IMG/VR virus record: IMGVR_UViG_3300032331_003609
Span: 1 to 64,000 of that record
Length of the DNA: 64,000 nucleotides
Reading direction: 5' to 3' (one strand)
The notes below the pieces were generated by a model. The model was not told where the DNA came from, ran no database searches, and saw only the letters and a list, made by a program, of their open reading frames with translations. Of this stretch, positions 17,228 through 63,741 are shown in pieces (within the stretch, counting starts at the first letter, position 1; each line of letters opens with the position of its first letter). Made by a program: the position numbers and the translations under genes.

Positions 17228-18907
17228 ATGTACATACTAGGTATATCAGCTTATTACCATGACTCTGCTGCGTGTCTATTCAGAAACGGAACTCTGATCG
17301 GTGCAGCTGAGGAAGAAAGATTTACTGGAATAAAGGGAGACAAAGCATTTCCAAATAAAACAATAGATTGGCTTTTGAGCTCCAATGGAATTAACATCTC
17401 TGACGTATCAACAGTTTGCTGGTATGAAAATCCGGATCTAAAGAGGGATAGGGTATTAAAAACATTTAAAAGAAACCCGATTAAAAATTGGAAAAGAATA
17501 ATCAAGCATTTTACGTGGGGTAATTTTCCAAAGCTTTGGAAGATACTCAACGAGGAAATAGGATTTTTTGGAAAAATTCACGTTGTCGATCATCATCTAT
17601 CTCATGCATCCCTTGCATATTTCACATCATATTTTGAAGAATGTAATATAGTAACCGTAGACGGCGTAGGAGAACATGAGACAATTACAATATCTAAGGC
17701 TTCCCAAAATAAAATAACCAAATTAGCATCAATAAATTATCCACATTCATTGGGTCTATTCTACTCTGCATTCACAGCATACCTTGGATTTAAACCCAAT
17801 GAGGGGGAATACAAGCTTATGGGCCTAGCAGCATACGGGGACCCTGACATATACAGAGAAAGAATTAAAAAAACAATAGCATTTAAAGAAGGCGAATTAT
17901 ATGTTGATATGAAATATTTTTCATGGGATTATTCTGATGAGATAATGTTCAATGAAAATCTTTGCGAGCTTTTAGAAATCCCGCCAAGAATTAGTACAGA
18001 CCCTTTAGATGATCAATATAAGCACATAGCGGCTGCCGTTCAGAAGATCTATGAAGAAATATTGTTTGATGTATTAAACCACAGCTACGAGCTTAATAGG
18101 AGCAGTAATCTTTGTTTAGGTGGGGGATGTGCTTATAACGGAGTAGCTAATGCTGGTATTCAAAAAAATACACCTTACAAAAAGATTTGGATACCGCTTT
18201 CCCCCTCTGATAGCGGATCAGCTATAGGTGCCTGCCTCCATTACATTAATATCAAAAAAGGGCAAAAAAGAAAAGGTGCATTCGAAGCATATCAGGGTCC
18301 ATCTTTTGGAATTAATGAAATAAGATCTGCTCTTTTGAAATATGGTAACAAAGTAGATTGGGAACACATGGAAACCTCAGCTCTTATAAAAAAATCTGCC
18401 AATCTTCTGAACAATGGAAATGTCTTTGGTTGGTTCCAGGGAAAAATGGAATTTGGTGCTAGAGCATTGGGAAACAGATCTATATTGGCTTCTCCTATAT
18501 TTCCAGGTATGCAAGATAGAATAAATTCTGTTATTAAGAAGAGAGAACTTTTTAGACCATTTGCACCATCCGTTTCTTTTGACAAAGCAAATCTTTATTT
18601 CGATATAGATTCGCCCGTCCCGTATATGAATATGGTGGTTAAAGTTAAACCCGGGTGGAATCTGCCTGCTATAACACACGTAGATGGTACTGCAAGGGTA
18701 CAGACTGTTACATCATTCGAAAATCCAAGATATCACAGATTACTAAAAGAAATGGAAGAATTATCAGGGTATCCAATATTATTAAATACCTCTTTTAATT
18801 TTAAGGATCAGACCATTACCCTTTATCCCGAGGATGCAATTATAAGATTTTTAGATTCAGAAATGGACTACTTAGTCTTGGGTAATTTCTTCGTTTCCAA
18901 AAAATAG
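17228..18907 (+). CDS. carbamoyltransferase, NodU/CmcH/TobZ family
   Basis: HDSAA, EEERF, HHLSHA, DGVGE, GEYKLMGLAAYG, GGCAYNG, EFGARALGNRSIL, RPFAPS, HVDGTARVQTV and LNTSFN motifs. Confidence 0.95.
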   Translation: MYILGISAYYHDSAACLFRNGTLIGAAEEERFTGIKGDKAFPNKTIDWLLSSNGINISDVSTVCWYENPDLKRDRVLKTFKRNPIKNWKRIIKHFTWGNFPKLWKILNEEIGFFGKIHVVDHHLSHASLAYFTSYFEECNIVTVDGVGEHETITISKASQNKITKLASINYPHSLGLFYSAFTAYLGFKPNEGEYKLMGLAAYGDPDIYRERIKKTIAFKEGELYVDMKYFSWDYSDEIMFNENLCELLEIPPRISTDPLDDQYKHIAAAVQKIYEEILFDVLNHSYELNRSSNLCLGGGCAYNGVANAGIQKNTPYKKIWIPLSPSDSGSAIGACLHYINIKKGQKRKGAFEAYQGPSFGINEIRSALLKYGNKVDWEHMETSALIKKSANLLNNGNVFGWFQGKMEFGARALGNRSILASPIFPGMQDRINSVIKKRELFRPFAPSVSFDKANLYFDIDSPVPYMNMVVKVKPGWNLPAITHVDGTARVQTVTSFENPRYHRLLKEMEELSGYPILLNTSFNFKDQTITLYPEDAIIRFLDSEMDYLVLGNFFVSKK

Positions 18908-52244: not shown

Positions 52245-53141
52245 ATGAAAGTAATTTGGGTCCTAGAAAATATTAAAAAGGGACATAAATTTTTTTTACC
52301 AGAAATAGAGCTTCTTGGATTAATTGCTTCTGTATCTAACTGGAAGATCCTGTATCCAAAAACATCCACCCATCTTTATTGCGATTCATCAGTTTTAGAA
52401 TATCTAGATAAAATAGAGATATCAGATCTTTGGGAAACAATACACACGAATGAATTAGATTCCCCGGATCTAATAGACAGAAACCCATTCTGGGCAGCTT
52501 CAAAAATTAAAGTCATAAAGGAAATAGAAGCTCCATTTATAATAATGGATTGCGATCTTTATTTCAAAGATCAATGTTTAGATCTTGATTCATTTTCAGA
52601 ATTTGATATAATTACAAACCAAATAGAGGATGGGATAGGATACTATCCTACAAAAAGGGATTCAGTTATAAAAGACATGATAGATCCATTCGGATACAAA
52701 TCAAGCCATGCATTCAATGTTGCATTTCTTTATATAGGAGATGAAAGGATCAGAAAAGAATATACAGATCTGGCATATTCCTGGATGGAGGATCTTTCTA
52801 TGAAGAACGAAGAATCTTTAAGTGGAAAGTATATGATTTTTTGTGAGCAAAAAATGCTAAAGGAATTTGCTGATCTTTATGATGCTAAAATAATATGTCT
52901 AGCAGATCATTCGATAAAAGGAGCTGAGGAAAAGATCCCTATAATAAATGGGTATAAAACATTGAATCTTAATGATTCTAATTATGTTCATTTGCATAGA
53001 CTAAAATCAAGGGTTAAATCAAATACAGGTTTGTTCCTTGATACCAGAAGTGATGTTATTAAATCAATTTATAATTTAGATAAACTGATGGCTAAGCGAT
53101 CTTTTTCTGCTCTTAAGCTTTCTAATGAGGATCTATTCTAA
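52245..53141 (+). CDS. glycosyltransferase-like protein (DUF6734-like)
   Basis: FWAASKIKVI...PFIIMDCDLY (DxD), FNVAFLYI, IFCEQKML, YVHL. Confidence 0.6.
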   Translation: MKVIWVLENIKKGHKFFLPEIELLGLIASVSNWKILYPKTSTHLYCDSSVLEYLDKIEISDLWETIHTNELDSPDLIDRNPFWAASKIKVIKEIEAPFIIMDCDLYFKDQCLDLDSFSEFDIITNQIEDGIGYYPTKRDSVIKDMIDPFGYKSSHAFNVAFLYIGDERIRKEYTDLAYSWMEDLSMKNEESLSGKYMIFCEQKMLKEFADLYDAKIICLADHSIKGAEEKIPIINGYKTLNLNDSNYVHLHRLKSRVKSNTGLFLDTRSDVIKSIYNLDKLMAKRSFSALKLSNEDLF

Positions 53142-53760
53142 CCTTTCTTTTGTCTGATATGATAAAATCATAAACTTTTTTATCATCCATTTCTACCCCA
53201 ATATAATCAAGCATTCTTTTTATCTCTTCTATATTATGATCTACATATAGATCTTCATAATAAAAAATTGGCCATGATTTTTCTTCGGCTATTAACTTCA
53301 TTCTTTCCGAGAAGTGTAAAAACGAATTTGTTTCCTTCTCTATTCTTACTTTATCTATTTTATCTATTTCGTATATCTTAGGGATATCCCATCCCATTTT
53401 AGAATCTGCATTTACTAAAAGACTTTCAGCCTGTAGTCTTTTGTCTCTCCTATCCAGAACTATAACTCTTTCAAAAAATCCATCCATCCAATTTATGAAT
53501 TCTATTTCTTCTAGCCCTAAAGATTTTACCGGATGTTGACTACATCCAAAAAGTGTTTTTATTAAGATCTTATCGAATTTTAAAAGAGGATTTATGTGAT
53601 CAAAATCAAATCCTTTTCTATAATAGTCCACATAATTTCTTGGGTTAAATGGCTCATAGAAGCATTCAAAGCCTTCTGAATAGAGTTGTGATTCTAGCAT
53701 CCTATATAAAGAAGTTGAGCCAGTTCTGGGTCTAGCCAGTATTGCTATTTTATTAAACAT
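53122..53760 (-). CDS. sulfotransferase-like protein
   Basis: ILARPRTGSTSL, YEPFN, LDRRD...AES, YYEDLY. Confidence 0.75.
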   Translation of the reverse strand: MFNKIAILARPRTGSTSLYRMLESQLYSEGFECFYEPFNPRNYVDYYRKGFDFDHINPLLKFDKILIKTLFGCSQHPVKSLGLEEIEFINWMDGFFERVIVLDRRDKRLQAESLLVNADSKMGWDIPKIYEIDKIDKVRIEKETNSFLHFSERMKLIAEEKSWPIFYYEDLYVDHNIEEIKRMLDYIGVEMDDKKVYDFIISDKRKVRIDPH

Positions 53761-54318
53761 TTATAATAATTTATTGACATCTTTATTTTTTCTAAGCCTT
53801 TGACCATACGGAAATTGTTTGTTTTCTAATTCTGGTATATTTAAATAATCCAGTATTCTTTCAAATCCGTTGTTATAATATAATTCTTCGTATGATATAT
53901 TAAAATAACCTTTATCTAAATAATTATCTTTTATTCCTAGTTTTATCTCGTTAAAATATGATGTATCAGCATCTTTGATCAGTTCTTCTTTAAATACCCA
54001 ATTTCTATCCCAATTATTTGTTTTATTAGCATTTAACCATGATTCGATTTGTTCTGTTGCATTCTCTCTATATAGTATAATCGTTTTATCACACACTGAT
54101 AATAATTCAGAAAAGTCTACTTCTGGGTAATATGTTTCTTTAATTAAAAGATGTTGTGTACTATATTCCCAAGATTTAGGGGATGTTCCGTTCTTAAACC
54201 ATTCTTTATCGGAACTAGTTATTGGTTCGAATAGTGTTGTAAATTTTTTATTAAAATAAAACCAATTTGCTAAATTTGTTGAACCACTTCTTGGCTCTGC
54301 TAAGATTGTGATTATCAT
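53761..54318 (-). CDS. sulfotransferase-like protein
   Basis: ILAEPRSGSTNL, FEP, LYREN..EQIES, SYEELY. Confidence 0.75.
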   Translation of the reverse strand: MIITILAEPRSGSTNLANWFYFNKKFTTLFEPITSSDKEWFKNGTSPKSWEYSTQHLLIKETYYPEVDFSELLSVCDKTIILYRENATEQIESWLNANKTNNWDRNWVFKEELIKDADTSYFNEIKLGIKDNYLDKGYFNISYEELYYNNGFERILDYLNIPELENKQFPYGQRLRKNKDVNKLL

Positions 54319-54932: not shown

Positions 54933-56435
54933 TTAAGGCTCAAATTTTTGGTTACCACCCCATCTACATGTTGGACACCATGTTTCATAACACCAGTTTC
55001 CGCAATACGTAGAACTACACCAGCATGTTGGATTGTGCATTATACTGTATAGTCCTTCTCCGATATCAACTAAGAATAAATCGGAAGGTTCAAAATCTAA
55101 ACCATAGATTGTTTTGATTGCATATTCCATTTCTAATCCGGTAATTGCTACTGTTGTCAATTCGTTTGTCTCGGAATCTGTTATTACTAATTTATCCCCG
55201 ATGTAAAAATTGTTTACATTTTCAAATCTTGTTTCGGTTGATCCTAATTCTTCAATAAAATATTTACAGCTTGGTGTATCTACCCAAGAAAGTCCATTTT
55301 CTAACGTGATTCTAATATGTATGGTGTCAACTTGTGCTGAAACAATTTCTTGTAAAGATGTGCTTAATTTTGTTAAAGTAGCATTTGCTTGGGCTAAATC
55401 GCAATCCCATCCATAGGTTTGCAAATTCTCTAGATTTGGGGTACCCCCAAGATTCCCATTTAAATCCGTGAATTGTATGGATCTCATATAATCACCTATT
55501 TGAATCGTACTTAAATCCGCTAAAGTTCCGTCATATTTTAAAATTTTGCTATCTTCTTCTAAGTGATAATTCACAAGACCAAATTTTCCTAAGGCCTTTG
55601 TAATGTATTTATATCTGCTCTTCTGCTTAAATTCTCTAGATCCATCTTTAAATTCATTCTGTGAAAATGAAACAGGAAGAACAGCAGATTGCTTATAGCA
55701 GCCCATGTTGATAATATCAATTTCTGAACCATATAGAATATCTATACTCCTGATAACACTATATTTTCCTTCTTCCAGATTCTGAACATCATATACAAAT
55801 TCTTGTAGCATGTTATTTTCCGGAAGATTAAGATTTGATTTCATTGCTCCAAATTCGGTTTCATTCTGGATAGAATAAATCGCGGGAAGTTGCATTGGAT
55901 CATATTGAGGATATCTGTGTTTTTTAATGAGATTTGGTTCATCCACGTTTGAATAGTCAAGAACATCTAATGTATCCAAAGATAATTCTCCTCCAAAGTA
56001 TGTTTTAGGTATAAATTCAGACCCTTCCATTAACTTAAAAAACTCAAATTTGTCTGCACAGTATGTTTCGTCTATTAGTGCTGTTGTATCAAAAGATTGT
56101 CTAAGAATGAATTTATGGTCAGCATCTTCTATATAAGGAACAGTAACGGAATTAGCGCTAACAATATGCGGAATATATGTTATTTCATTCTCCTCACATT
56201 TTTCCTTCAATATTTCCTCAAATCTGTGGGGGAAATTGAGAGGTAGAAATGCTTCGGTATCTGTGTATATGTAATGAAATTCTGTGATGTTATTCAGAAC
56301 CAGCATAGAGAATAAGGGCGCATAATCTAATAAATCTGCACCATTATTATAAATAGTTGTGTTTGTGTTAATCTCTAGAATTTTTACATCTTCCCCTGTT
56401 TGTAATAAATCGCTACCAATTATAGTTGCTTTCAT
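54933..56435 (-). CDS. circularly permuted ATP-grasp-like domain + Hint domain + Cys/Trp-rich C-terminal peptide
   Basis: N-terminal GSDLL...ILEINTN (ATP-grasp D..E.N), then LIKK and MLQEF; Hint-like LEEDSKILKYDG..IQIGDYMRS ... IYGLDFEPSDLFLV...IMHN; then PTCWCSSTYCGNWCYETWCPTCRWGGNQKFEP. Confidence 0.7.
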   Translation of the reverse strand: MKATIIGSDLLQTGEDVKILEINTNTTIYNNGADLLDYAPLFSMLVLNNITEFHYIYTDTEAFLPLNFPHRFEEILKEKCEENEITYIPHIVSANSVTVPYIEDADHKFILRQSFDTTALIDETYCADKFEFFKLMEGSEFIPKTYFGGELSLDTLDVLDYSNVDEPNLIKKHRYPQYDPMQLPAIYSIQNETEFGAMKSNLNLPENNMLQEFVYDVQNLEEGKYSVIRSIDILYGSEIDIINMGCYKQSAVLPVSFSQNEFKDGSREFKQKSRYKYITKALGKFGLVNYHLEEDSKILKYDGTLADLSTIQIGDYMRSIQFTDLNGNLGGTPNLENLQTYGWDCDLAQANATLTKLSTSLQEIVSAQVDTIHIRITLENGLSWVDTPSCKYFIEELGSTETRFENVNNFYIGDKLVITDSETNELTTVAITGLEMEYAIKTIYGLDFEPSDLFLVDIGEGLYSIMHNPTCWCSSTYCGNWCYETWCPTCRWGGNQKFEP

Positions 56436-56467: not shown

Positions 56468-56773
56468 TTATAAAATCGTCCTAAAATCCTTTATTTTTAT
56501 AATTTTACCATATTTAGCATCGACTTCTTTCCATTTGCCCTTTGGACATGGTTCAGATTCCATACTAAATATCTTCCTATTTATGGGACATCCACAGCTT
56601 CCACAAATTGCTGACCATGATTTTTTTTTAAGTATTTCAGTGTAATGTTCACACCCCGAATTATCTGCATCTCCCTGACATATTAGCAACCTTTCCTGTG
56701 AGTTTGCCCTTTCGATCTCTGTTGGGTTTTTAGACCTTTTCCAAGCATTGAATATCTCTATAAAATTTATCAT
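56468..56773 (-). CDS. small Cys-rich (Zn/Fe-S) protein
   Basis: RLLIC...GCEH...ICGSCGC...K...CPKGKW. Confidence 0.7.
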   Translation of the reverse strand: MINFIEIFNAWKRSKNPTEIERANSQERLLICQGDADNSGCEHYTEILKKKSWSAICGSCGCPINRKIFSMESEPCPKGKWKEVDAKYGKIIKIKDFRTIL

Positions 56774-57498
56774 ATTAATGTTCTATTAGATTTGACGATG
56801 TCATACCTATCATAGATAGAATTATAGCGCGTGATGAATTCGTCATCTAGTTTTAGATTACATTCGAAATGTTGGCTTCCGTTTGATTTTTCCATTTTAA
56901 AAGGCTTACCAATTTTATTAGATACCCATTTTTCTAATTCGTCAAATTTTCCAAATTCGAACCAAGTTATATTAGGGTCGTTGTTGTGCCAATATGAAGT
57001 TGGTCTAAATATAATTTCGAACATATTTCCTAAATATGTATCATATTTTTCATCCATCCCAATTTTTTTTATGAATTCACTGACTGTATTACGTAATGCT
57101 TCTGTAGTAAAAATATCGGTATCTTTATAAAATAGAATATCATTTACGTTTAATTTTTGTAATATAGTACTATATTTTTCCCCATGCTCAAAGTGTATCA
57201 TGTCAATTAAATGCTTCCAGACTGAAATGAATCGTTCATGTCTATTTCTCCTTATTGCAATTATTTCATATTGATCTCCAAAGTGTCTTTTTAGATTTAA
57301 TATACCCTCATGCAGATGAAGCATGATGTCTGCAAGATATTCATTATCCAATTTTAAATCGATGTTAGCATTGTGCTTATCTATGATCTTTTGTTCGCCA
57401 TGCTTTACGTCCAATTCACTACGCAAACAAGATATGTAAAAAGAAGTAGATGCACATCTAGGTAAACTAATAAATAAAAAATTGTTTTCTATTAACAT
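56770..57498 (-). CDS. sulfotransferase-like protein (Sulfotransfer_2 type)
   Basis: FISLPRCASTSF, HLH, IRRNRHERFISVW. Confidence 0.7.
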   Translation of the reverse strand: MLIENNFLFISLPRCASTSFYISCLRSELDVKHGEQKIIDKHNANIDLKLDNEYLADIMLHLHEGILNLKRHFGDQYEIIAIRRNRHERFISVWKHLIDMIHFEHGEKYSTILQKLNVNDILFYKDTDIFTTEALRNTVSEFIKKIGMDEKYDTYLGNMFEIIFRPTSYWHNNDPNITWFEFGKFDELEKWVSNKIGKPFKMEKSNGSQHFECNLKLDDEFITRYNSIYDRYDIVKSNRTLI

Positions 57499-58722
57499 CT
57501 ATATTAAAGATTTTTGTTTTTGTTTGATTCCTTTATTTATTATGTCGTAGGAGAATTTACCAAATGTAATACTAGCTTCATCTGCAAATATATCGGCTAG
57601 ATCTTTTTTTGGTTTAAAATTATACGAAGAATCTATTATTAAATCTAAAGGATGTGGCAAATCCCCTGCTAAATCATTCACTTTTTTCCAAAAATTGGTA
57701 TCTGTTCTATTTGTCAAATAATGATAATAAATAAAAATCATATTTTGTGTATTGATAGAATTAACAAATTTATTATATTTTTCTAAAGTAATTTTTTTGG
57801 AAATAACCTCATTGAATACTTCTAGTTGTAAAATTACAGTCATTATTGAAGTGGCCTCTAATGGCTCTAAAAATCCGGTGCTTAATCCTATTGCCAAGCA
57901 ATTTTCAATCCATACATTTTCGTATGATCCTGGTTTAAATTTAATTTGTCTATTAAATTCAACAGAATGTCCTACCCATTCTATTATTTCTTTTTTGGCA
58001 TCATCTTCAGTAATTTCAGTTGAGTCAAATATGTAGCCACACCCCATTCTTGTCTGGAGTGGTATCTGCCACATCCATCCATGTTTCATAGCGATAGATT
58101 TGGTTGTTGTTTTTATGTCAGTAATCTTGTTTGGTAAAAAAAACGGAATTGCGGTATTTACTTTTAAATGAGATTCGTACGAAATCCAATTTGATTTATA
58201 ATGATTACCGATTAATAATCTTTTAAAACCGGAGCAATCAATAACAAATGATGCATCAATCGTTGAATCTGTTGTCTTAAGCCCAATAATTCTGTTTTCG
58301 TCACTTGCTACTGTTTCGGTTACAATACCTTCGATCCAATTAACCCCCCGTTCGATCGATAAGGATTTAAGGTATTTTGCTAATAATCTAGCATTAAAAT
58401 GGTACGCATATCCTTGGCCTTTTACTTTATAATCAATCGGATGATGATACGCAAGATTAGGCTCTGTCCAATTTTCAAAATCAATACCTGTTTTAAATGT
58501 TGCCTCGCAATTTTTGATCATATCATCAGATGTGATCCCTAGCTCATTTAAAAATTTTACAATATTACCAGTAGTTCCTTCACCCGCACCCAATATTCCG
58601 ATCTCATCACTTTCGATTAATGTTATTTTTGAATTTTTAAATTTACTATTTAAATACAACGCTGACAACCATCCTGCTGTACCCCCGCCAACTATAACAA
58701 TATTATCTAAATTATATTTCAT
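57499..58722 (-). CDS. tryptophan halogenase-like flavin-dependent enzyme (PrnA family)
   Basis: GGGTAGW, GAGEGT, ATFKTGIDF, YHFNA, IDCSGF, GWMWQIPL, GLSTGFLEPLEATSI. Confidence 0.9.
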   Translation of the reverse strand: MKYNLDNIVIVGGGTAGWLSALYLNSKFKNSKITLIESDEIGILGAGEGTTGNIVKFLNELGITSDDMIKNCEATFKTGIDFENWTEPNLAYHHPIDYKVKGQGYAYHFNARLLAKYLKSLSIERGVNWIEGIVTETVASDENRIIGLKTTDSTIDASFVIDCSGFKRLLIGNHYKSNWISYESHLKVNTAIPFFLPNKITDIKTTTKSIAMKHGWMWQIPLQTRMGCGYIFDSTEITEDDAKKEIIEWVGHSVEFNRQIKFKPGSYENVWIENCLAIGLSTGFLEPLEATSIMTVILQLEVFNEVISKKITLEKYNKFVNSINTQNMIFIYYHYLTNRTDTNFWKKVNDLAGDLPHPLDLIIDSSYNFKPKKDLADIFADEASITFGKFSYDIINKGIKQKQKSLI

Positions 58723-58723
58723 A

Positions 58724-59368
58724 CTATATTAACGATTTTTGTTTTTTGATAAATTCAAATCCAACATTTCCAGCTAAAACCATCCTATCCTTTGTTGAAT
58801 CCAGCGCGTGCTGTGGAGAGTGAGGTAGATCTGATTTCATTATTATAAAATCCCCTTCTTTTGGTAATATAAAATATTCGCAATCATCTTCACCTTTAAT
58901 ATACAAAGTGCCATCATCATCTTTTAAATTGTCAGGCATTTGAATATAATATATCCACGTAAAATGAGGTATAAATGTATTTCTTTTTTGATTTATTTCT
59001 GTATGTATGTGGTATTGGCGTAATTCGCTTTCGATATTATAGAATTGTACAGGATTTTTAGCTCTAACTACGTTTACCCAGCAATCTGTACTTATTTTAT
59101 TAAATGGTAAATTATACTCCATTTCGAAGATCTTAATGCATGATTGGATTCCAAAAATTAAAATTTCGTCTAATTTATTTTCAATCTTAATTTCTCCAAC
59201 AAAATTTAAATCATTACTTTCCTCGAAATAACCATAGCCATCTTGTGTGACATTAGGTAAGCCTTCAATAATTTCGTTGCACTTTTTTAAAATGTCATTT
59301 TTAAAATCCAGGAGATTTAATACATCTTTATATAAATACGTGATCCTATCATAGATTATCTTTTCCAT
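58724..59368 (-). CDS. putative 2OG-Fe(II) oxygenase
   Basis: YHIH, WIYYIQMP, GTLYI, PKEGDFIIMKSDLPHSP, RMVLAGN. Confidence 0.7.
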   Translation of the reverse strand: MEKIIYDRITYLYKDVLNLLDFKNDILKKCNEIIEGLPNVTQDGYGYFEESNDLNFVGEIKIENKLDEILIFGIQSCIKIFEMEYNLPFNKISTDCWVNVVRAKNPVQFYNIESELRQYHIHTEINQKRNTFIPHFTWIYYIQMPDNLKDDDGTLYIKGEDDCEYFILPKEGDFIIMKSDLPHSPQHALDSTKDRMVLAGNVGFEFIKKQKSLI

Positions 59369-59373
59369 AAAAA

Positions 59374-59838
59374 TTAAATAATAGATTTGGTTGTATGTGG
59401 TTCTAAAACATTATTTACATTAATTTTTAAATAATATTTTGTACCACTGAGAATTTTATTATTTCCGCATTTAATGTTAGGAAAAAAAGTTATCATATCT
59501 CCTGGTAGATTATTCATATGTAAATTTTTATTAGTTTCCTCATTTAGAAATATAAAATTCCCTCCCTTAAAATCTGAATTTAATACTAGCAATAATGTAA
59601 GATCATACCCGGGTTGGCTTAAAAAAACAGGTTCAGTATTTTCTGTAGATATGCTGTAAAATTTTATATCATTTATAGACATACCGCTCCCGTTGTATTT
59701 CATCTTATTCAAATGCTCTTTTAATTTTTGAGCCAAGAAATCATTGCTGGTGGATAATTCATTTTTAAAATCATACAAAAGACTATTACATTCCTCAGAT
59801 GATATAAAATTTTTTAAACATGTAACTCGTTTTTCCAT
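59374..59838 (-). CDS. degenerate 2OG-Fe(II) oxygenase-fold protein
   Basis: LTLLLVLNSDFKGGNFIF...PGDMITF...GTKY; the metal-ligand His residues appear absent. Confidence 0.65.
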   Translation of the reverse strand: MEKRVTCLKNFISSEECNSLLYDFKNELSTSNDFLAQKLKEHLNKMKYNGSGMSINDIKFYSISTENTEPVFLSQPGYDLTLLLVLNSDFKGGNFIFLNEETNKNLHMNNLPGDMITFFPNIKCGNNKILSGTKYYLKINVNNVLEPHTTKSII

Positions 59839-60401
59839 TATATTAAGTTCTGTTTACCTAATTTTGTTTTAACTAACCCGATCCAATTTACCAAAGAATA
59901 TCGCACACCTTTTTGAATAGGGGTTACTCTATGTACCAATCTTGAATTAAACACATATAATGTTCCAATTTTGTTTTCTATTGTTACATGTTCTCCTTTA
60001 ATATTTTTAATCTCTAATATACCCCCCGTATACATTTCGTTTAGTTGAATTACTATTGACATAAACCTGTCTTTATATACTAAATCCGTGCTATCTGTGT
60101 GCCAATCAAAGTATTCCCCCTCTTTATATTCGGTAAATTGATATTGCCCCAATTTGGTAGCTTCCATACCGTTTATATCGAGAGAGTTCCTTAATTTGCT
60201 TGTTAATCTTTTATTTAAAAATCCCAAATCAGATATCCAACCAACCGACGATTTTCTGTTTATTTTATTAAGGGGTTTTTTAGCTGTCTCACCATATACA
60301 GTGGCAGGTGATAAAATTAATTCTTCCTTGCATTTATTTAAAATGAAATCACATTCTTCTTTAGAAAGAAAATTTTTGAAAATACCGATATAATCGTTCA
60401 T
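59838..60401 (-). CDS. 2OG-Fe(II) oxygenase (PKHD type)
   Basis: QFTEY..GEYFDWHTD, SIVIQLN..YTGG, HRVTPIQKGVRYSLVNW. Confidence 0.9.
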   Translation of the reverse strand: MNDYIGIFKNFLSKEECDFILNKCKEELILSPATVYGETAKKPLNKINRKSSVGWISDLGFLNKRLTSKLRNSLDINGMEATKLGQYQFTEYKEGEYFDWHTDSTDLVYKDRFMSIVIQLNEMYTGGILEIKNIKGEHVTIENKIGTLYVFNSRLVHRVTPIQKGVRYSLVNWIGLVKTKLGKQNLI

Positions 60402-60415
60402 TATTGAATGTAATT

Positions 60416-60748
60416 TTATGTGATATTTCTAATTATTATTGTTAGAGATATGCAAATCCATATGGTATTAAAAGCAACTAATGTTGGCAGATTTTTTTTC
60501 ATAGAAGCCCATATCAAAAGAGAAGAAGTGAGAAGTGTTAAAAAGTGCATATACCAAAGTTCTATTCCAAAAACTAATCCGGGTATAATGATCATGGCCT
60601 TTGTAAGCCACGCTGCAAACTCTATTGTATTATAATCCGTCCAGTAATTCTTATCAAGAAACATTTTATACCTATCAAGTATCTTCCCCCACCCTATTAT
60701 GTAATAGAGTAATATATTAAAAGCAGCAAAGACCAGCACGTATTTCAT
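60416..60748 (-). CDS. multi-TM membrane protein
   Basis: About four hydrophobic segments. Confidence 0.7.
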   Translation of the reverse strand: MKYVLVFAAFNILLYYIIGWGKILDRYKMFLDKNYWTDYNTIEFAAWLTKAMIIIPGLVFGIELWYMHFLTLLTSSLLIWASMKKNLPTLVAFNTIWICISLTIIIRNIT

Positions 60749-60772
60749 TTTTAAACGATATTTAATTATATC

Positions 60773-61252
60773 CTATATTAGGGTTTTTTCTTTCTTTTCT
60801 ATTCCTATATAGAATGAAATTAAACTAAATCTACTTCCCCTGATAACATTTAAAACCCGATGCTTTATTTTTTTATGCAGCATTATGCTATAATTCATTT
60901 GAGGCGTTATTTTTATTTTTTGATTCTTAAAAATATACTCAAATTCACCGCCATCAAAATCTTCATTAATATATGTAACAATGGTTAAATCTGCTTTATC
61001 GTTATGAAAATCGTCATTAATATTTGTTTTATCGGTTACCTTGTTAATCCATAAGCCGCTTAACTCGTAGCCGTTTGGTAAATATTTTGAGCATTTTTCC
61101 TGATATTCTAGCAGATCTTTTTCCGCGTTTAATATTTTTCTAACGTAGTAATTATTTCCATCAGGTACCTGGGTTTCTACAAAATCCGAGCATATCAAAC
61201 CTAAAAAAAGCAGATCCTTCTCTGACAACAGATTTTGGTGTGTGTTAATCAT
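60773..61252 (-). CDS. 2OG-Fe(II) oxygenase
   Basis: FHND, IVTYINEDFDGGEF, HRVLNVIRGSRFSLISF. Confidence 0.85.
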   Translation of the reverse strand: MINTHQNLLSEKDLLFLGLICSDFVETQVPDGNNYYVRKILNAEKDLLEYQEKCSKYLPNGYELSGLWINKVTDKTNINDDFHNDKADLTIVTYINEDFDGGEFEYIFKNQKIKITPQMNYSIMLHKKIKHRVLNVIRGSRFSLISFYIGIEKKEKTLI

Positions 61253-61264
61253 AACAGCTTTTTA

Positions 61265-61474
61265 CTATTTCTTAAGTCCGTACTTAATCCATCTATACCA
61301 AATTCTCTCATGTAAGTAATATTGAATTGGTTTATAGATTAATTCTGCTACCCCAAATGCTGCTCCTACTTTAATGGAACCGCTTATTAACCACATTAAT
61401 AAGAATCCAATCACCGTACTTACTATGCGATATGAGATTGTTTTTGCTATATGTCTTTTTCTTTCTACTATCAT
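61265..61474 (-). CDS. DUF2061-like small membrane protein
   Basis: RHIAKTISYRIVST...YYLHERIW. Confidence 0.75.
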   Translation of the reverse strand: MIVERKRHIAKTISYRIVSTVIGFLLMWLISGSIKVGAAFGVAELIYKPIQYYLHERIWYRWIKYGLKK

Positions 61475-61851
61475 TATCCTTTTGTTTCGTCATAGGTAAT
61501 AGATCCGTCTGGTGTCATATGTCCGGTTCTGATTGCAGTTCCGCTTATCGCCGCAACATCTACTGGTGGTTCATGGTAGATCACGTCATATCCAACCCCA
61601 CGTCCGTAGTTTACACTCTCAATGTCAGGAATTACCGAAATTAGAAGTCTCCCTGTTTGTATGTAATCATTTAAAGCAACCTTTAGTTCGTCAAAAACTT
61701 GTTGGGAAGATTTAGGATTGTTCTCATCCTGCGGGACATCCCTGATTGCAACCCAAACGTTTTTTCCCTGGCTGAATTGTTGGTCTATTAACCACTGATG
61801 GCCTTTATGCCAGTTCTGCCATCTCCCGATATAAAGTGAGTATTTTTTCAT
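61474..61851 (-). CDS. HIGH-superfamily nucleotidyltransferase (NadM/cytidylyltransferase-like)
   Basis: YIGRWQNWHKGH and ISGTAIR motifs. Confidence 0.8.
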   Translation of the reverse strand: MKKYSLYIGRWQNWHKGHQWLIDQQFSQGKNVWVAIRDVPQDENNPKSSQQVFDELKVALNDYIQTGRLLISVIPDIESVNYGRGVGYDVIYHEPPVDVAAISGTAIRTGHMTPDGSITYDETKG

Positions 61852-62285
61852 ATAGATTCTAGATTTAGAAGTGAGATAAGTTCCTCGAGGGATTCTTCAG
61901 GATTATCCCCATTTGTGAAAGTTTTATGATTGCTTACAGGGAATTCAAATGTTCCTACGTGGAATTTTTCTTTCCCCGAGAAATGTGGCCGATTGAAAAG
62001 AACTTCTATCACCTCATTATTCGCTTTTAGATCCTCCCTAATTGCACGATAAGGACAAACCATACTTATCACTACATCATGTCCCTTTTGGCTCATAAAG
62101 CGAGCTATAGTGAACGATTTTTCGATGTTTCTGATCCTTCCAGAGTATGAATAATCGGTATTTGGGAAGATCTCTCTTAGATCATCTCCATCTATCCAAA
62201 TAGTGCTATTCCCAAGTTTTTTTACCAGCCTGCTAGCCATCTCGGTCTTTCCCGTTCCTGGCTGTCCGATGAATAAATAAATCAT
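61848..62285 (-). CDS. cysC: adenylyl-sulfate (APS) kinase
   Basis: GQPGTGKT, IDGDDLRE, DYSYSGRIRNI, VISMVCPY. Confidence 0.8.
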   Translation of the reverse strand: MIYLFIGQPGTGKTEMASRLVKKLGNSTIWIDGDDLREIFPNTDYSYSGRIRNIEKSFTIARFMSQKGHDVVISMVCPYRAIREDLKANNEVIEVLFNRPHFSGKEKFHVGTFEFPVSNHKTFTNGDNPEESLEELISLLNLESI

Positions 62286-62296
62286 ATGCTTAAAAT

Positions 62297-62413
62297 TTAA
62301 TGGTTATATGTAAATGGATCTCTTTTTCTAATTTCTTCTATTTTTTTTAGAAATTCTTTCTTTTTTTTCCTTTTTTGGAAGTAATTTTTAATCCAGTTGA
62401 TTAGTTTTCTCAT
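62297..62413 (-). CDS. small basic peptide (38 aa)
   Basis: MRKLINWIKNYFQKRKKKKEFLKKIEEIRKRDPFTYNH; first gene of the minus-strand operon. Confidence 0.55.
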   Translation of the reverse strand: MRKLINWIKNYFQKRKKKKEFLKKIEEIRKRDPFTYNH

Positions 62414-62514
62414 TGCATTTATTATATTAATTATATATTTTAAGTTTCCCACCCTATATGGCATATTATTTCGGAATTTTATTGCATTTTGCTCTAAAAT
62501 ATTAAAATATAAAT

Positions 62515-63741
62515 ATGGTCTGGAATTACAAAGACACATTGCTAGTTCACGTTGAGCTTTCTAATATGTGTAATGCTGCTTGTCCGCTTTGTCCAAGATA
62601 CGTGAATAACTCATTAAGAGTCAATCCCGAGCTTGATTTGGGTAGTGTTTCATTAGAAGATTTTAAAAAATGGTTCCCCTTAGATTTTGTTCAGAAAAGT
62701 AAAAGCTGGATATTTTGCGGAACCAATGGTGATCCTATAATGGCAAGGGATGTTTACGAAATACTGGAATATGTACTTCGCAATTCGGAAGCGAAGGTTC
62801 AGGTAAACACTAACGGATCCATCAGAGATGGGGAATTTTGGGAAAAAATGGGAGCATTATTTGCAGAACCCTGTGTCAATAGTAGATACGTTGTTTTTTC
62901 AGTCGATGGATTGGAAGACACAAATCACATCTATAGAAGAAACGTCAAATGGGATAGGGTGATGGAAAATATGGGAGCATATTCCAAATCGGGTTCTACC
63001 GGAATTTGGGATTTTTTAATATTTAAACACAACGAACATCAGTTAGATGAGGCAGAGGCACTTTGTAAAAAAATAGGATTAGCGTTTTCTCCAAAAAGAC
63101 CTTTCGGGTTTGAGACAGGAAACCCAGATGAATATCAGGATCTAATGGTTTATGATTTAGATGGCAATTTTTTATACAGGATAGAACCTGCTAGCGAAGA
63201 GTGGAGATTAAACAGATCCCTCAATAAATTTCAAAAAGGGGAAGAAAAAATATGGGTTCCCGGGAAGGAGAAAAAAAGTAAGGATCAGACAGAAGAAAAA
63301 TGGAACGGATTAATAGAAAGAGATCTTCCTAAATATCAATTTCCAGAAAGATTCAAGGGAAAATCTGTTAGCTGTAAATCATGCCATCCTATAGGAAAGG
63401 AAATATACGTTGACTGTAAGGGTAATGTTATGCCTTGCTGTTTTGTAGGAACAATGTACAATAGTGATTTTCAACACCACGAAGCATTGCAGATCAAAAA
63501 GCACTTACAAGATTGGGGGTTAGATAAAATAAATTTAAACAACCATTCTCTTGAAGAAATATTAGACAGCAAGTATTTAGACGATGTATTTGCAAATAGA
63601 TGGGATGGTGCTAAAAAGGATGAGGATAAAATGGGATATTGTTTCAATACATGTTCGGTTGATCATATGAAAGACCTTTTCGTTAGAAAGGAGGAATTAC
63701 CTATATCCCCGGAAAAACACGAGATAAAAAGTCTTATATAG
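62515..63741 (+). CDS. radical SAM protein with SPASM/twitch domain
   Basis: CNAACPLC (CxxxCxxC), GTNGDP, SVDGL; C-terminal C...IYVDCKGNVMPCC...CFNTC. Confidence 0.9.
   Translation: MVWNYKDTLLVHVELSNMCNAACPLCPRYVNNSLRVNPELDLGSVSLEDFKKWFPLDFVQKSKSWIFCGTNGDPIMARDVYEILEYVLRNSEAKVQVNTNGSIRDGEFWEKMGALFAEPCVNSRYVVFSVDGLEDTNHIYRRNVKWDRVMENMGAYSKSGSTGIWDFLIFKHNEHQLDEAEALCKKIGLAFSPKRPFGFETGNPDEYQDLMVYDLDGNFLYRIEPASEEWRLNRSLNKFQKGEEKIWVPGKEKKSKDQTEEKWNGLIERDLPKYQFPERFKGKSVSCKSCHPIGKEIYVDCKGNVMPCCFVGTMYNSDFQHHEALQIKKHLQDWGLDKINLNNHSLEEILDSKYLDDVFANRWDGAKKDEDKMGYCFNTCSVDHMKDLFVRKEELPISPEKHEIKSLI

Follow-up and report, generated by a model that had tools for sequence, protein, structure and literature searches.

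Downstream of a short APS kinase, a large T4-like phage carries three candidate sulfotransferase genes, and the question that this locus raises is where the APS for that kinase comes from. The window, that is the whole stretch of DNA that we analysed, comprises positions 1 to 64,000 (64,000 nucleotides) of the IMG/VR virus record IMGVR_UViG_3300032331_003609. A profile search of the 245-kb phage record identified neither Sat (PF01747) nor a PAPS_reduct-type gene. The kinase gene is followed by genes for a 125-residue nucleotidyltransferase (hereafter the transferase) and a small DUF2061 membrane protein, and a preliminary description of the DNA had proposed that this transferase is a minimal, non-canonical ATP sulfurylase. 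Our analyses indicated that this is likely, in that the transferase would represent a third type of ATP sulfurylase that resembles PPAT/NMNAT and feeds PAPS synthesis. The support is from comparative genomics only and there is no biochemistry; to our knowledge, no enzymology exists for the transferase family.

The genes of this triad overlap, and their order is established (Table 1). On the minus strand the stop codon of the kinase gene and the start codon of the transferase gene share an ATGA, as the plus strand reads tcat at 61848-61851, and the transferase stop and the DUF2061 start share TAATG at 61472-61476. All of the sequence statements in the preliminary description were confirmed (an ATGA overlap of cysC with a 125-aa HIGH-type nucleotidyltransferase gene, WHKGH and ISGTAIR motifs, and a DUF2061-like next gene). 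Its placing of these genes at the head of an operon held only in part, because a conserved 80-aa ORF precedes the kinase on the same strand, such that the triad is near, not strictly at, the head of the gene string. Of 82 related phage loci, 14 have a homologue of this ORF ahead of the kinase, and a family search with it returned nothing above cut-off. The sulfotransferase genes are located 3.8-8 kb downstream of the triad, and the intervening DNA encodes three to four 2OG-Fe(II) oxygenase-like proteins, a tryptophan halogenase and a 500-aa protein.

Table 1. Coordinates in the window of the triad, the preceding ORF and the sulfotransferase genes.
Feature	Position	Strand	Proposed role or basis
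Short APS-kinase-family P-loop kinase, 145 aa	61848-62285	-	proposed APS -> PAPS step
HIGH-motif nucleotidyltransferase, unnamed family, 125 aa	61474-61851	-	proposed ATP + sulfate -> APS + PPi step
DUF2061 small membrane protein, 69 aa	61265-61474	-	Pfam; constant partner of the transferase in phages
ORF of 80 aa, no assigned function	62297-62539	-	ORF list; 5' of the kinase
Sulfotransferase, carbohydrate-type (Sulfotransfer_2-like), 242 aa	56770-57498	-	proposed PAPS consumer
Sulfotransferase candidate, Stf0/Sulfotransfer_3-like, 185 aa	53761-54318	-	PRSGST loop, Atlas neighbours
Sulfotransferase candidate, Sulfotransfer_3-like, 212 aa	53122-53760	-	PRTGST loop, sub-cut-off Pfam match

A promoter and terminator scan of 52.8-63 kb, which is AT-rich, returned no more sites than expected by chance. 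At gene junctions, YTAATATAR had 16 matches versus 10.8 expected, an excess that does not clearly stand out from chance (11 of 100 shuffles attained this count); a longer pattern, TTAATATRRNATG, had one match. A DNA search of deposited phages with 61265-62285 returned zero matches, and an exact look-up of the L147 protein gave no record. The sequencing runs that contained the DNA were DNA runs only, with freshwater and lake labels at small shares.

The identification of the first gene as cysC held with a qualification, as its product is a short and divergent APS kinase that passes the Pfam threshold but falls below NCBIfam equivalog cut-offs. It scored 40.8 bits against APS_kinase (PF01583; cut-off 21.1, E 3e-10) and 42.2 bits against the TIGR00455 equivalog, whose cut-off of 138.7 was not reached. 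In a search of solved structures, each of its nine best matches (2e-8 to 6e-4) was an APS kinase or an APS-kinase domain. Alignment showed a lid segment ~25 residues shorter than in canonical APS kinases, with which the P-loop, DGDxxR, GRxxN and PYxxxR motifs align and G7, G12, K13, D32, G33, D34, R37, R50, P78 and R83 are invariant, and N53 nearly so. Conversion of APS to PAPS by this protein is inferred from sequence alone.

The preliminary description had also named three sulfotransferases; they are divergent, and the naming held on other evidence though none of the three genes scored above Pfam cut-offs. The Atlas neighbours of the 242-aa product were viral Sulfotransfer_2 clusters (score 0.96), and its family profile matched heparan sulfate 2-O-sulfotransferase (E 0.003). 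A fold search with its AF2 model (pLDDT 90.6) returned sulfotransferases as 48 of the 50 top entries (Z 8.5 to 5.9; Foldseek gave weak E-values only, and the Z values are those of a second structural comparison). Residues P13, R14, S17 and T18 are conserved in 27 homologues. This protein met the test of a sulfotransferase fold with an N-terminal PAPS-binding loop, and its use of PAPS is inferred; its gene was found in 45 of the 82 related phage loci. The loop of the 185-aa candidate is also N-terminal, and its Atlas neighbours were Sulfotransfer_3, Stf0 and Sulfotransfer_1 viral clusters (score 0.97). For the 212-aa candidate the match to Pfam Sulfotransfer_3 (E 1.8e-4; 22.2 bits with a cut-off of 27) was sub-threshold and confined to the N-terminal loop.

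The transferase has the motifs GRWQNWHKGH (residues 9-18) and ISGTAIR (residues 102-108), as well as IRD, NNP and IPDIESVNYGRGVGY. In the family alignment G9, R10, Q12, H15, G17 and H18, and I102, S103, T105 and R108, were invariant or nearly so, and invariant residues specific to the family were R37, N45-P46, D76, G83-R84 and V86-G87-Y88. Against PPAT and NMNAT, its AF2 model (pLDDT 92) had Z scores of 9.3-10.1 across 105-112 residues, again in the second structural comparison, Foldseek having yielded weak E-values only. A profile search matched archaeal NMNAT (E 1e-12) over the N-terminal 80 residues only. The transferase itself was below the cut-offs of PF01467 (14.6 versus 21) and TIGR00125 (23.7 versus 27.7), and 39 of 48 long relatives matched PF01467 at E <= 0.001. 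Based on HxGH, ISxTxxR and a Rossmann-like fold, it met the definition of the HIGH-motif nucleotidyltransferase superfamily. No curated model claims the family, whose members bear public names such as "cytidyltransferase-like", "phosphopantetheine adenylyltransferase" and "kinase", and in the literature searched there was no paper describing it as an ATP sulfurylase. One cellular orthologue is the transferase domain of the Halocatena pleomorpha protein with the NCBI accession WP_185715462.1.

The kinship to Sat that the preliminary description had drawn through the HIGH superfamily extended to superfamily motifs only, and the nearest relatives are archaeal NMNAT/NadM and PPAT. No match of PF01747 to the transferase was obtained at E <= 0.1, only 2 of the 48 long relatives gave a weak one (1.6e-4), and there was no Sat among the top sequence or Z-ranked matches. 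A Sat-like ancestry was rejected; hhalign with a canonical Sat aligned the ISGT segment only, at a probability of 49.5%.

These relationships raise the possibility that the transferase is an ordinary NMN or phosphopantetheine adenylyltransferase with which the phage boosts NAD or CoA, its proximity to cysC being incidental. The best sequence and fold matches (NMNAT, NadM and PPAT) favor this reading, as does the JGI naming of many members as phosphopantetheine adenylyltransferase. Against it, the transferase scored 16.6 and 20.7 bits with the NMNAT models TIGR01527 and NF002243 (cut-offs 181.2 and 127), and its relatives at most 53 bits, over profile positions ~1-80 only. With the PPAT model NF001985 it reached 17.7 bits versus 104, and relatives reached 24-28 bits versus 103 with the PPAT models (TIGR01510, NF001985). 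In addition, a family-specific loop takes the place of the substrate-binding half, the fusion or adjacency partner is APS kinase and not NAD or CoA genes, and Halocatena has a separate, weaker match (E 1.2e-10) that is probably its true NMNAT. We consider this reading very unlikely, and return to the transferase as a putative ATP sulfurylase.

Across the 82 related phage loci, the DUF2061 partner followed the transferase in 81 (identity 52-96%, mostly 77-96%) and a kinase homologue in 59, nearly always directly upstream of the transferase (mostly 35-53% identity, up to 82%), and the arrangement of the triad is therefore not a matter of chance. The two-gene module of the preliminary description required correction, as the conserved unit is three genes including DUF2061. 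The assignment of the phage protein to DUF2061 (PF09834) was supported by 62 bits versus a cut-off of 23.1 (E 7e-17, 51 of 52 profile positions). In P0144 DUF2061 is fused to the transferase, and in Bacteroidota it is found in the gene strings Rrf2-DUF2061-cysH-cysD and cysQ-DUF2061x2-cysC-cysD. DUF2061 is thus the most constant partner of the transferase in phages and is also tied to bacterial cys operons. In the literature searched it was mentioned only within lists of iron-regulated genes. A role in sulfate entry or membrane anchoring is possible and no more than a guess.

In the remaining 23 phage loci the search detected no kinase close to the pair of transferase and DUF2061. Some of these loci adjoin the end of a contig, but in several the sequence extends 10 kb upstream, and the pair is therefore not strictly dependent on a phage kinase. 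Searching for a kinase elsewhere in these records was uninformative, as they are 8-18% complete.

Fusions provided further evidence of linkage. APS_kinase was carried by 36 of the 48 long transferase relatives (best E 9.5e-69), many of the partners being full-length APS kinases (170-230 bits), and fusion arose more than once since both domain orders exist. In the best 80 cellular loci, the transferase was fused to a full APS kinase in 35, adjacent to one on the same strand in 19, within about 400 bp of one in 3, and unlinked in 23. One locus has a transferase-kinase fusion beside Sulfotransfer_1 and a polysaccharide flippase, and a Marinimicrobia capsule locus has the transferase with Sulfotransfer_5. 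Unrelated phages have consecutive genes for Sulfotransfer_1, APS kinase, transferase and DUF2061, and one phage an APS kinase-transferase fusion followed by DUF2061. A Nitrospiraceae string consists of Rrf2, sulfite reductase, PAPS reductase and the transferase. At an Acidobacteriota locus CysD and CysN directly adjoin a transferase-kinase fusion, which would be redundant if both make APS. The fusions in phages of Xylella, Xanthomonas and Stenotrophomonas had no nearby sulfotransferase.

By analogy with PPAT and dephospho-CoA kinase, the pair might make a different 3'-phosphorylated adenylyl compound, the short phage kinase not acting on APS. In favor of this are the truncation of the phage kinase, its scores below equivalog cut-offs, and the lack of sulfotransferase neighbors for the Xylella-type fusions. 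However, many transferases are fused to full-length APS kinases, and the short kinase type adjoins sulfotransferases in phage and Marinimicrobia loci, retains the APS-binding motifs, and is the sole APS kinase in several genomes (G018, G020-22, G025, G032 and G035). We regard this alternative, too, as very unlikely, and the reading of the pair as an APS- and PAPS-forming unit is retained below.

If the transferase makes APS, genomes that have it should manage without Sat and CysD, and the preliminary description had indeed placed it "instead of" CysDN/Sat. This held in most cases, not universally. Co-occurrence with cysC, which had been suggested as a check, was complete, as all 47 transferase-bearing genomes had an APS kinase. 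Sat was found in 4 of them and CysD in 5, with either in 8, compared to Sat or CysD in 37 of 37 control Bacteroidota genomes that have an APS kinase and no transferase (Fisher p = 3e-16). The search for the transferase in genomes recovered 5 of 5 positive controls. In the phylum of genome G029 (81 genomes), 68 had an APS kinase; 58 of these had the transferase without Sat/CysD, 10 had Sat without the transferase, and none had both or neither (p = 3e-12). The genomes in these counts are not independent of one another phylogenetically, and many are MAGs. On genome evidence only, the transferase stands in for Sat/CysDN in many bacteria, archaea and phages.

The exceptions bear on another explanation, in which the transferase has a different job in PAPS metabolism, with the host or an unrecognised enzyme as the source of APS. 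Such jobs could be adenylylating another oxyanion or a small phosphate or sulfate compound, acting as a kinase accessory that binds APS/PAPS, or handling by-products. Consistent with this are the CysD-CysN genes at one transferase locus, the 8 of 47 genomes with Sat or CysD, the kinase-less transferase-DUF2061 pairs in some phages, and the absence of Sat-like sulfate motifs. Against it, an APS kinase without any source of APS would remain in 39 of 47 genomes and, in one phylum, in 58 of 58. The invariance of HxGH and ISxTxxR favors catalysis over a mere binding role. We judge this explanation unlikely, although less so than the two above.

The inference that the transferase is an ATP sulfurylase is supported because of the fusions and adjacency, the sulfur neighborhoods, the complementarity with Sat/CysD and the absence of Sat from the phage record. 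We propose that the three overlapping genes would form a self-contained sulfate-activation module. The transferase, a minimal ATP sulfurylase of PPAT/NMNAT ancestry, would make APS and pyrophosphate, with the HxGH and ISxTxxR motifs binding ATP and stabilising sulfate attack on the alpha-phosphate. The family-specific invariant residues, which replace the NMN- or pantetheine-binding half of the relatives, would be candidates for holding sulfate. The equilibrium of ATP sulfurylase is very unfavourable, and a 125-residue enzyme without a GTPase must overcome it; the short APS kinase, which we infer to be translationally coupled, may pull it by phosphorylating the APS 3'-OH to give PAPS. A complex prediction for kinase and transferase scored 0.00, which is evidence neither way. 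The three downstream sulfotransferases would then consume the PAPS, and DUF2061, a predicted two-helix membrane protein, would partner the transferase.

A bolder reading, towards which we lean only slightly, is that the transferase is an independently recruited third class of ATP sulfurylase. Its signature would be GRWQPxHxGH ... RD ... NP ... PDIESVNYGRxVGY ... ISxTxIR in about 110-150 residues. In this reading it would be the sole sulfate activator in whole lineages (the phylum of G029, titled Thermodesulfobacteriota/Dadabacteria, Marinimicrobia, Omnitrophota, many Patescibacteria and some archaea), and phages would spread it along with DUF2061, which would be a membrane component of sulfate activation that has gone unrecognised. 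If true, a third enzyme type would stand beside the two textbook types and an annotation gap would close, as, in the samples searched, a recognisable ATP sulfurylase is missing from 39 of the 47 genomes with the transferase and from 58 of the 68 APS-kinase genomes of one phylum, and pathway reconstructions would now score these genomes as incapable of APS/PAPS synthesis. It would also reveal the minimum size of an ATP sulfurylase, show the HIGH-motif scaffold to have been recruited to sulfate a second time, give the family a function, and join DUF2061 to sulfur metabolism. Large aquatic phages would then carry all that is needed to provide their own sulfotransferases with PAPS.

Among known systems, Sat and the Sat-CysC or PAPS synthase fusions (PF01747; 2gks, 1v47) share with the transferase the proposed reaction, the pairing or fusing with APS kinase, the HIGH superfamily, HxxH and an ISGTxxR-like motif. 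Sat, however, has about 390 residues, a PUA-like N-domain, and QxRNxxHxxH and GRDHAG motifs (SRNVVHRAH and GRDHAG in the canonical Sat of genome G005), whereas the transferase has 125 residues, GRWQNWHKGH and YGRGVGY. CysD-CysN has the same proposed reaction, and its distribution and that of the transferase are mutually exclusive in most APS-kinase genomes, but it has an unrelated PAPS-reductase-like ATP pyrophosphatase fold and is GTP-driven, and the phage module has no GTPase. Archaeal NMNAT/NadM (1f9a, 1ej2, 2qjt; TIGR01527) is the nearest relative in both sequence (E 1e-12) and fold (Z 9.7-9.9) and shares GRFQPxHxGH-type and SGTxIR motifs. It has ~170 residues, the transferase match ends at about residue 80, and in the transferase an invariant RD stands in place of its GS and the PDIESVNYGRxVGY loop in place of its nucleotide-binding half. 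PPAT (CoaD) is the best structural match (Z 10.1), at 13-18% identity. With CoaD followed by CoaE, fused in eukaryotic CoA synthase, adenylyl transfer comes first, after which a P-loop kinase phosphorylates the adenosine 3'-OH. The phage pair would carry out the same two-step chemistry, but with a partner of the APS-kinase family in place of CoaE and, unlike CoaD-CoaE, in a genomic context of sulfur metabolism.

The window covers the initial 64 kb of a phage record that is 244,850 bp long, with a completeness estimate of 86% (IMG/VR), and carries a T4-type Gp23 capsid gene at 164–166 kb. The kinase, transferase and DUF2061 genes are among the first in a string of minus-strand genes that extends from ~62.5 kb to 53.1 kb, the kinase stop overlapping the transferase start in ATGA and the transferase stop overlapping the DUF2061 start in TAATG. 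Downstream of this triad, three or four genes resemble those of 2OG-Fe(II) oxygenases; further genes encode a tryptophan halogenase and 242-aa, 101-aa Cys-rich, 500-aa, 185-aa and 212-aa proteins. Neither Sat nor PAPS_reduct-type genes were found in the phage record by profile search.

Features of the phage record discussed in the text
Feature	Position	Strand	Description
Carbamoyltransferase	17228-18907	+	Nol-type; PHROG 1601, E 5e-110
212-aa protein	53122-53760	-	sulfotransferase candidate
185-aa protein	53761-54318	-	sulfotransferase candidate
500-aa protein	54933-56435	-	no family match
242-aa protein	56770-57498	-	sulfotransferase candidate
Tryptophan halogenase	57499-58722	-	flavin-dependent; Pfam E 7e-97
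DUF2061 gene	61265-61474	-	69 aa; Pfam E 7e-17
Transferase	61474-61851	-	125 aa; GRWQNWHKGH and ISGTAIR
Kinase	61848-62285	-	145-aa P-loop kinase; Pfam APS_kinase
rSAM-SPASM gene	62515-63741

None of the three sulfotransferase candidates met a Pfam cut-off; the 212-aa protein had an N-terminal match to Sulfotransfer_3 that was below it (E 1.8e-4). Atlas neighbours (scores 0.96–0.97) were viral Sulfotransfer_2 clusters for the 242-aa protein and Sulfotransfer_3/Stf0 for the 185-aa protein. A profile built on 27 homologues of the 242-aa protein matched heparan sulfate 2-O-sulfotransferase at E 0.003, and sulfotransferases made up 48 of the 50 top structural entries (Z 8.5 to 5.9) for its AF2 model (pLDDT 90.6). 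The preliminary description had reported a cysC gene overlapping a 125-aa HIGH-type nucleotidyltransferase gene in ATGA, then a DUF2061-like gene, and this held in the ORFs, motifs and Pfam matches. Its placing of these genes at the head of an operon with three sulfotransferases held with qualifications, as the triad is near the start of the string and the sulfotransferases have Atlas, profile and fold support only.

The set of tailoring enzymes in this phage, including the carbamoyltransferase and tryptophan halogenase, is unusually rich for a phage. The 245-kb genome has 260 ORFs that encode at least 100 aa, and ten of these end in [KRQN][STN][LI][IL], typically K-S/T-L-I, eight of the ten clustered at window positions 56468–63741 and two at 68923–69834 and 92860–93591 of the phage record. 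The clustered bearers are the 101-aa protein, the 242-aa sulfotransferase, the halogenase, 2OG-oxygenase-like proteins of 159, 187 and 214 aa, an unassigned 154-aa ORF and the rSAM-SPASM gene; the tail is absent from the kinase, transferase and DUF2061, and is present on 245 of 1,305 ORFs of related phage loci. It may be a docking tail shared by tailoring enzymes, or a junction motif. The 500-aa protein, for which Pfam and PHROG searches gave no match, ends in a conserved MHN and a Cys/Trp/Tyr-rich tail of ~30 residues, with the pattern CWCxWxYCGxWCxSxYCPxC in ~20 related loci. Judging by sequence alone, the MHN resembles an HN cleavage site of Hint/intein type that would release a peptide behind it. 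This end, together with the halogenase, oxygenases, sulfotransferases and rSAM-SPASM gene nearby, suggests that the phage encodes a heavily modified peptide or protein tip, which may be the sulfation target.

The kinase scored 40.8 bits against Pfam APS_kinase (cut-off 21.1), missed the NCBIfam equivalog cut-offs, and had as its nine top solved-structure relatives only APS kinases or APS-kinase domains. When aligned with canonical members, it retains the positions of the P-loop, DGDxxR, RxxN and PxxxxR motifs, but ~25 residues of the lid are missing. It is a short, divergent member of the APS kinase family. That the kinase–transferase pair makes another 3′-phospho-adenylyl product would require a different substrate for this kinase, and we consider it very unlikely.

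The transferase matched Pfam CTP_transf_like only weakly (E 0.039) and fell short of the generic TIGR00125 domain (23.7 bits, against 27.7); no curated NCBIfam model claims its family. By word search it has 3,176 relatives, almost all of them 125–128 aa long, which JGI names 'phosphopantetheine adenylyltransferase' or 'hypothetical protein'. A diverse 54-member profile matched archaeal NMNAT (1f9a, E 1e-12) and NadM, essentially within the first 80 residues only, and ATP sulfurylase was absent from the 60 listed rows of that search (67 sequences at E ≤ 10). For the AF2 model (pLDDT 92), PPAT and archaeal NMNAT gave Z ~10 over ~110 residues, while Thermus ATP sulfurylase did not appear before Foldseek rank 41. 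The signature G9 R10 Q12 H15 G17 H18, R37, N45 P46, D76 I77, G83 R84 V86 G87 Y88, I102 S103 T105 R108 is invariant from phages to archaea. These profile, fold and motif results indicate a compact HIGH-motif nucleotidyltransferase with NMNAT/PPAT as nearest kin, and to that extent the earlier label of NadM-like held. That it is an ordinary NMNAT or PPAT is the reading we rate lowest: despite the kinship it scored 17–21 bits against NCBIfam NMNAT and PPAT models with cut-offs above 100.

Linkage to APS kinase is recurrent. The first half of PHROG 10255 ('kinase') corresponds to the kinase and the second half to the transferase, and the two are a single protein in phages of Xylella, Xanthomonas and Stenotrophomonas. 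In cultured phages of these hosts and of Clavibacter this form is ~245 aa, with 'kinase', 'adenylylsulfate kinase' or 'hypothetical' as its annotation; in Xylella phage Sano (gp35, L001) and Stenotrophomonas phage DLP_6 (L002) it lies among early genes, and a Sano 'cysteine dioxygenase' is 3.5 kb upstream. An exhaustive representative search gave 785 transferase clusters; among the 48 members at least 185 aa long, 36 carried APS_kinase, with full-length scores of 139–231 bits in seven of ten long members scanned individually. Fusions occur in both domain orders, and one long member is fused to DUF2061. Species-representative genomes held >553 transferase loci, in Planctomycetota, Omnitrophota, Patescibacteria, Marinimicrobia, Bacteroidota, Acidobacteriota, Nitrospiraceae, Thermodesulfobacteriota/Dadabacteria-titled MAGs and several archaea. 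Among the best 80, the fusion was transferase–kinase in 26 and kinase–transferase in nine; an unfused kinase was adjacent on the same strand in 19, ~400 bp off in three and absent from the locus in 23.

Among the neighbourhoods, one fusion has Sulfotransfer_1 and polysaccharide flippase genes beside it, and in a Marinimicrobia capsule locus Sulfotransfer_5, Wzi and Poly_export surround the pair. Unrelated phage contigs of 31–59 kb have a row of Sulfotransfer_1, 142-aa kinase, 132-aa transferase and DUF2061, and another phage has a kinase–transferase fusion, then DUF2061. A Nitrospiraceae string runs Rrf2, sulfite reductase (NIR_SIR plus TusA), PAPS reductase, transferase.

DUF2061 follows the transferase in 81 of 82 related phage loci and is better conserved there (mostly 77–96% identity) than the transferase (69–88%) or the kinase (mostly 35–53%). 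A kinase homologue is in only 59 of the 82, several of the others having 10 kb of upstream DNA. DUF2061 was also in 5 of 101 Bacteroidota genomes, in two of them (L179/L180, in G044 and G137) inside sulfate-assimilation strings: Rrf2–DUF2061–PAPS reductase (cysH)–CysD, and CysQ-like–tandem DUF2061–CysC–CysD. These strings link DUF2061 with sulfate activation even apart from the transferase, and the gene context points to a role in activation or uptake. The literature searched mentions DUF2061 only as an iron-regulated membrane protein.

All 47 transferase-bearing genomes had an APS kinase, and only eight had Sat (4) or CysD (5); ten of those without either are chromosome-level records. From a control sample of 100 Bacteroidota genomes, the 37 with APS kinase all had Sat or CysD (Sat 10, CysD 28) and none had the transferase (positive control of the search 5/5; Fisher p = 3e-16). 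In 81 genomes of the Thermodesulfobacteriota/Dadabacteria-titled phylum (transferase 59, APS kinase 68, Sat 11, CysD 7), the transferase was absent from every genome with Sat or CysD; the 68 with APS kinase had the transferase only (58) or Sat only (10), never both or neither (p = 3e-12). This is the pattern of non-orthologous displacement of ATP sulfurylase, with the caveat that genome counts are not phylogenetically independent. Within that phylum, a set of genomes of ~1.0 Mb had CysD without APS kinase or transferase (G179–G181, G184, G187, G195, G218) and four more of similar length had none of the four genes; therefore sulfur-activation gene content switches by clade. Two control genomes, Methanocaldococcus jannaschii and Methanosarcina acetivorans, matched the APS_kinase profile without Sat or CysD; here too an APS-kinase-like gene occurs where no ATP sulfurylase is recognised.

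The preliminary description had inferred a non-canonical, minimal ATP sulfurylase and proposed co-occurrence with cysC as a check. Fusions, neighbourhoods and genome complementarity favour that inference; there is no biochemistry, and we hold it with moderate confidence. The transferase would adenylylate sulfate (ATP + sulfate -> APS + PPi). The roles of HxGH and ISxTxxR are established for the HIGH-motif superfamily, and the transferase motifs are proposed to act likewise, with R37, R84 and the GRxVGY loop as candidate sulfate holders. From the fusions and overlap, the coupled short APS kinase would draw the reaction toward PAPS, which the three sulfotransferases may consume, judging by context; more speculatively, DUF2061 may assist at the membrane. 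In kinase-less phages, host CysC or APS reductase could receive APS. Several points count against this reading. The transferase lacks a sulfate motif like that of Sat; both systems are present in 8 of the 47 genomes, one example being an Acidobacteriota locus with CysD–CysN next to a transferase–kinase fusion; and no sulfotransferase was found near the Xylella-type phage fusions (L001, L002). Another role within PAPS metabolism seems unlikely.

The literature searched describes no such ATP sulfurylase, and public sources name the family generically. If the ATP sulfurylase reading is confirmed, the transferase would be a third kind, beside Sat and CysD(-CysN). Only the ISGT motif of a canonical 388-aa Sat, from one of the genomes, aligned with the transferase profile (probability 49.5%), and the substrate half of NMNAT and PPAT gives way to a family-specific loop. 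The reaction and the pathway are known already; what is new is the enzyme family.
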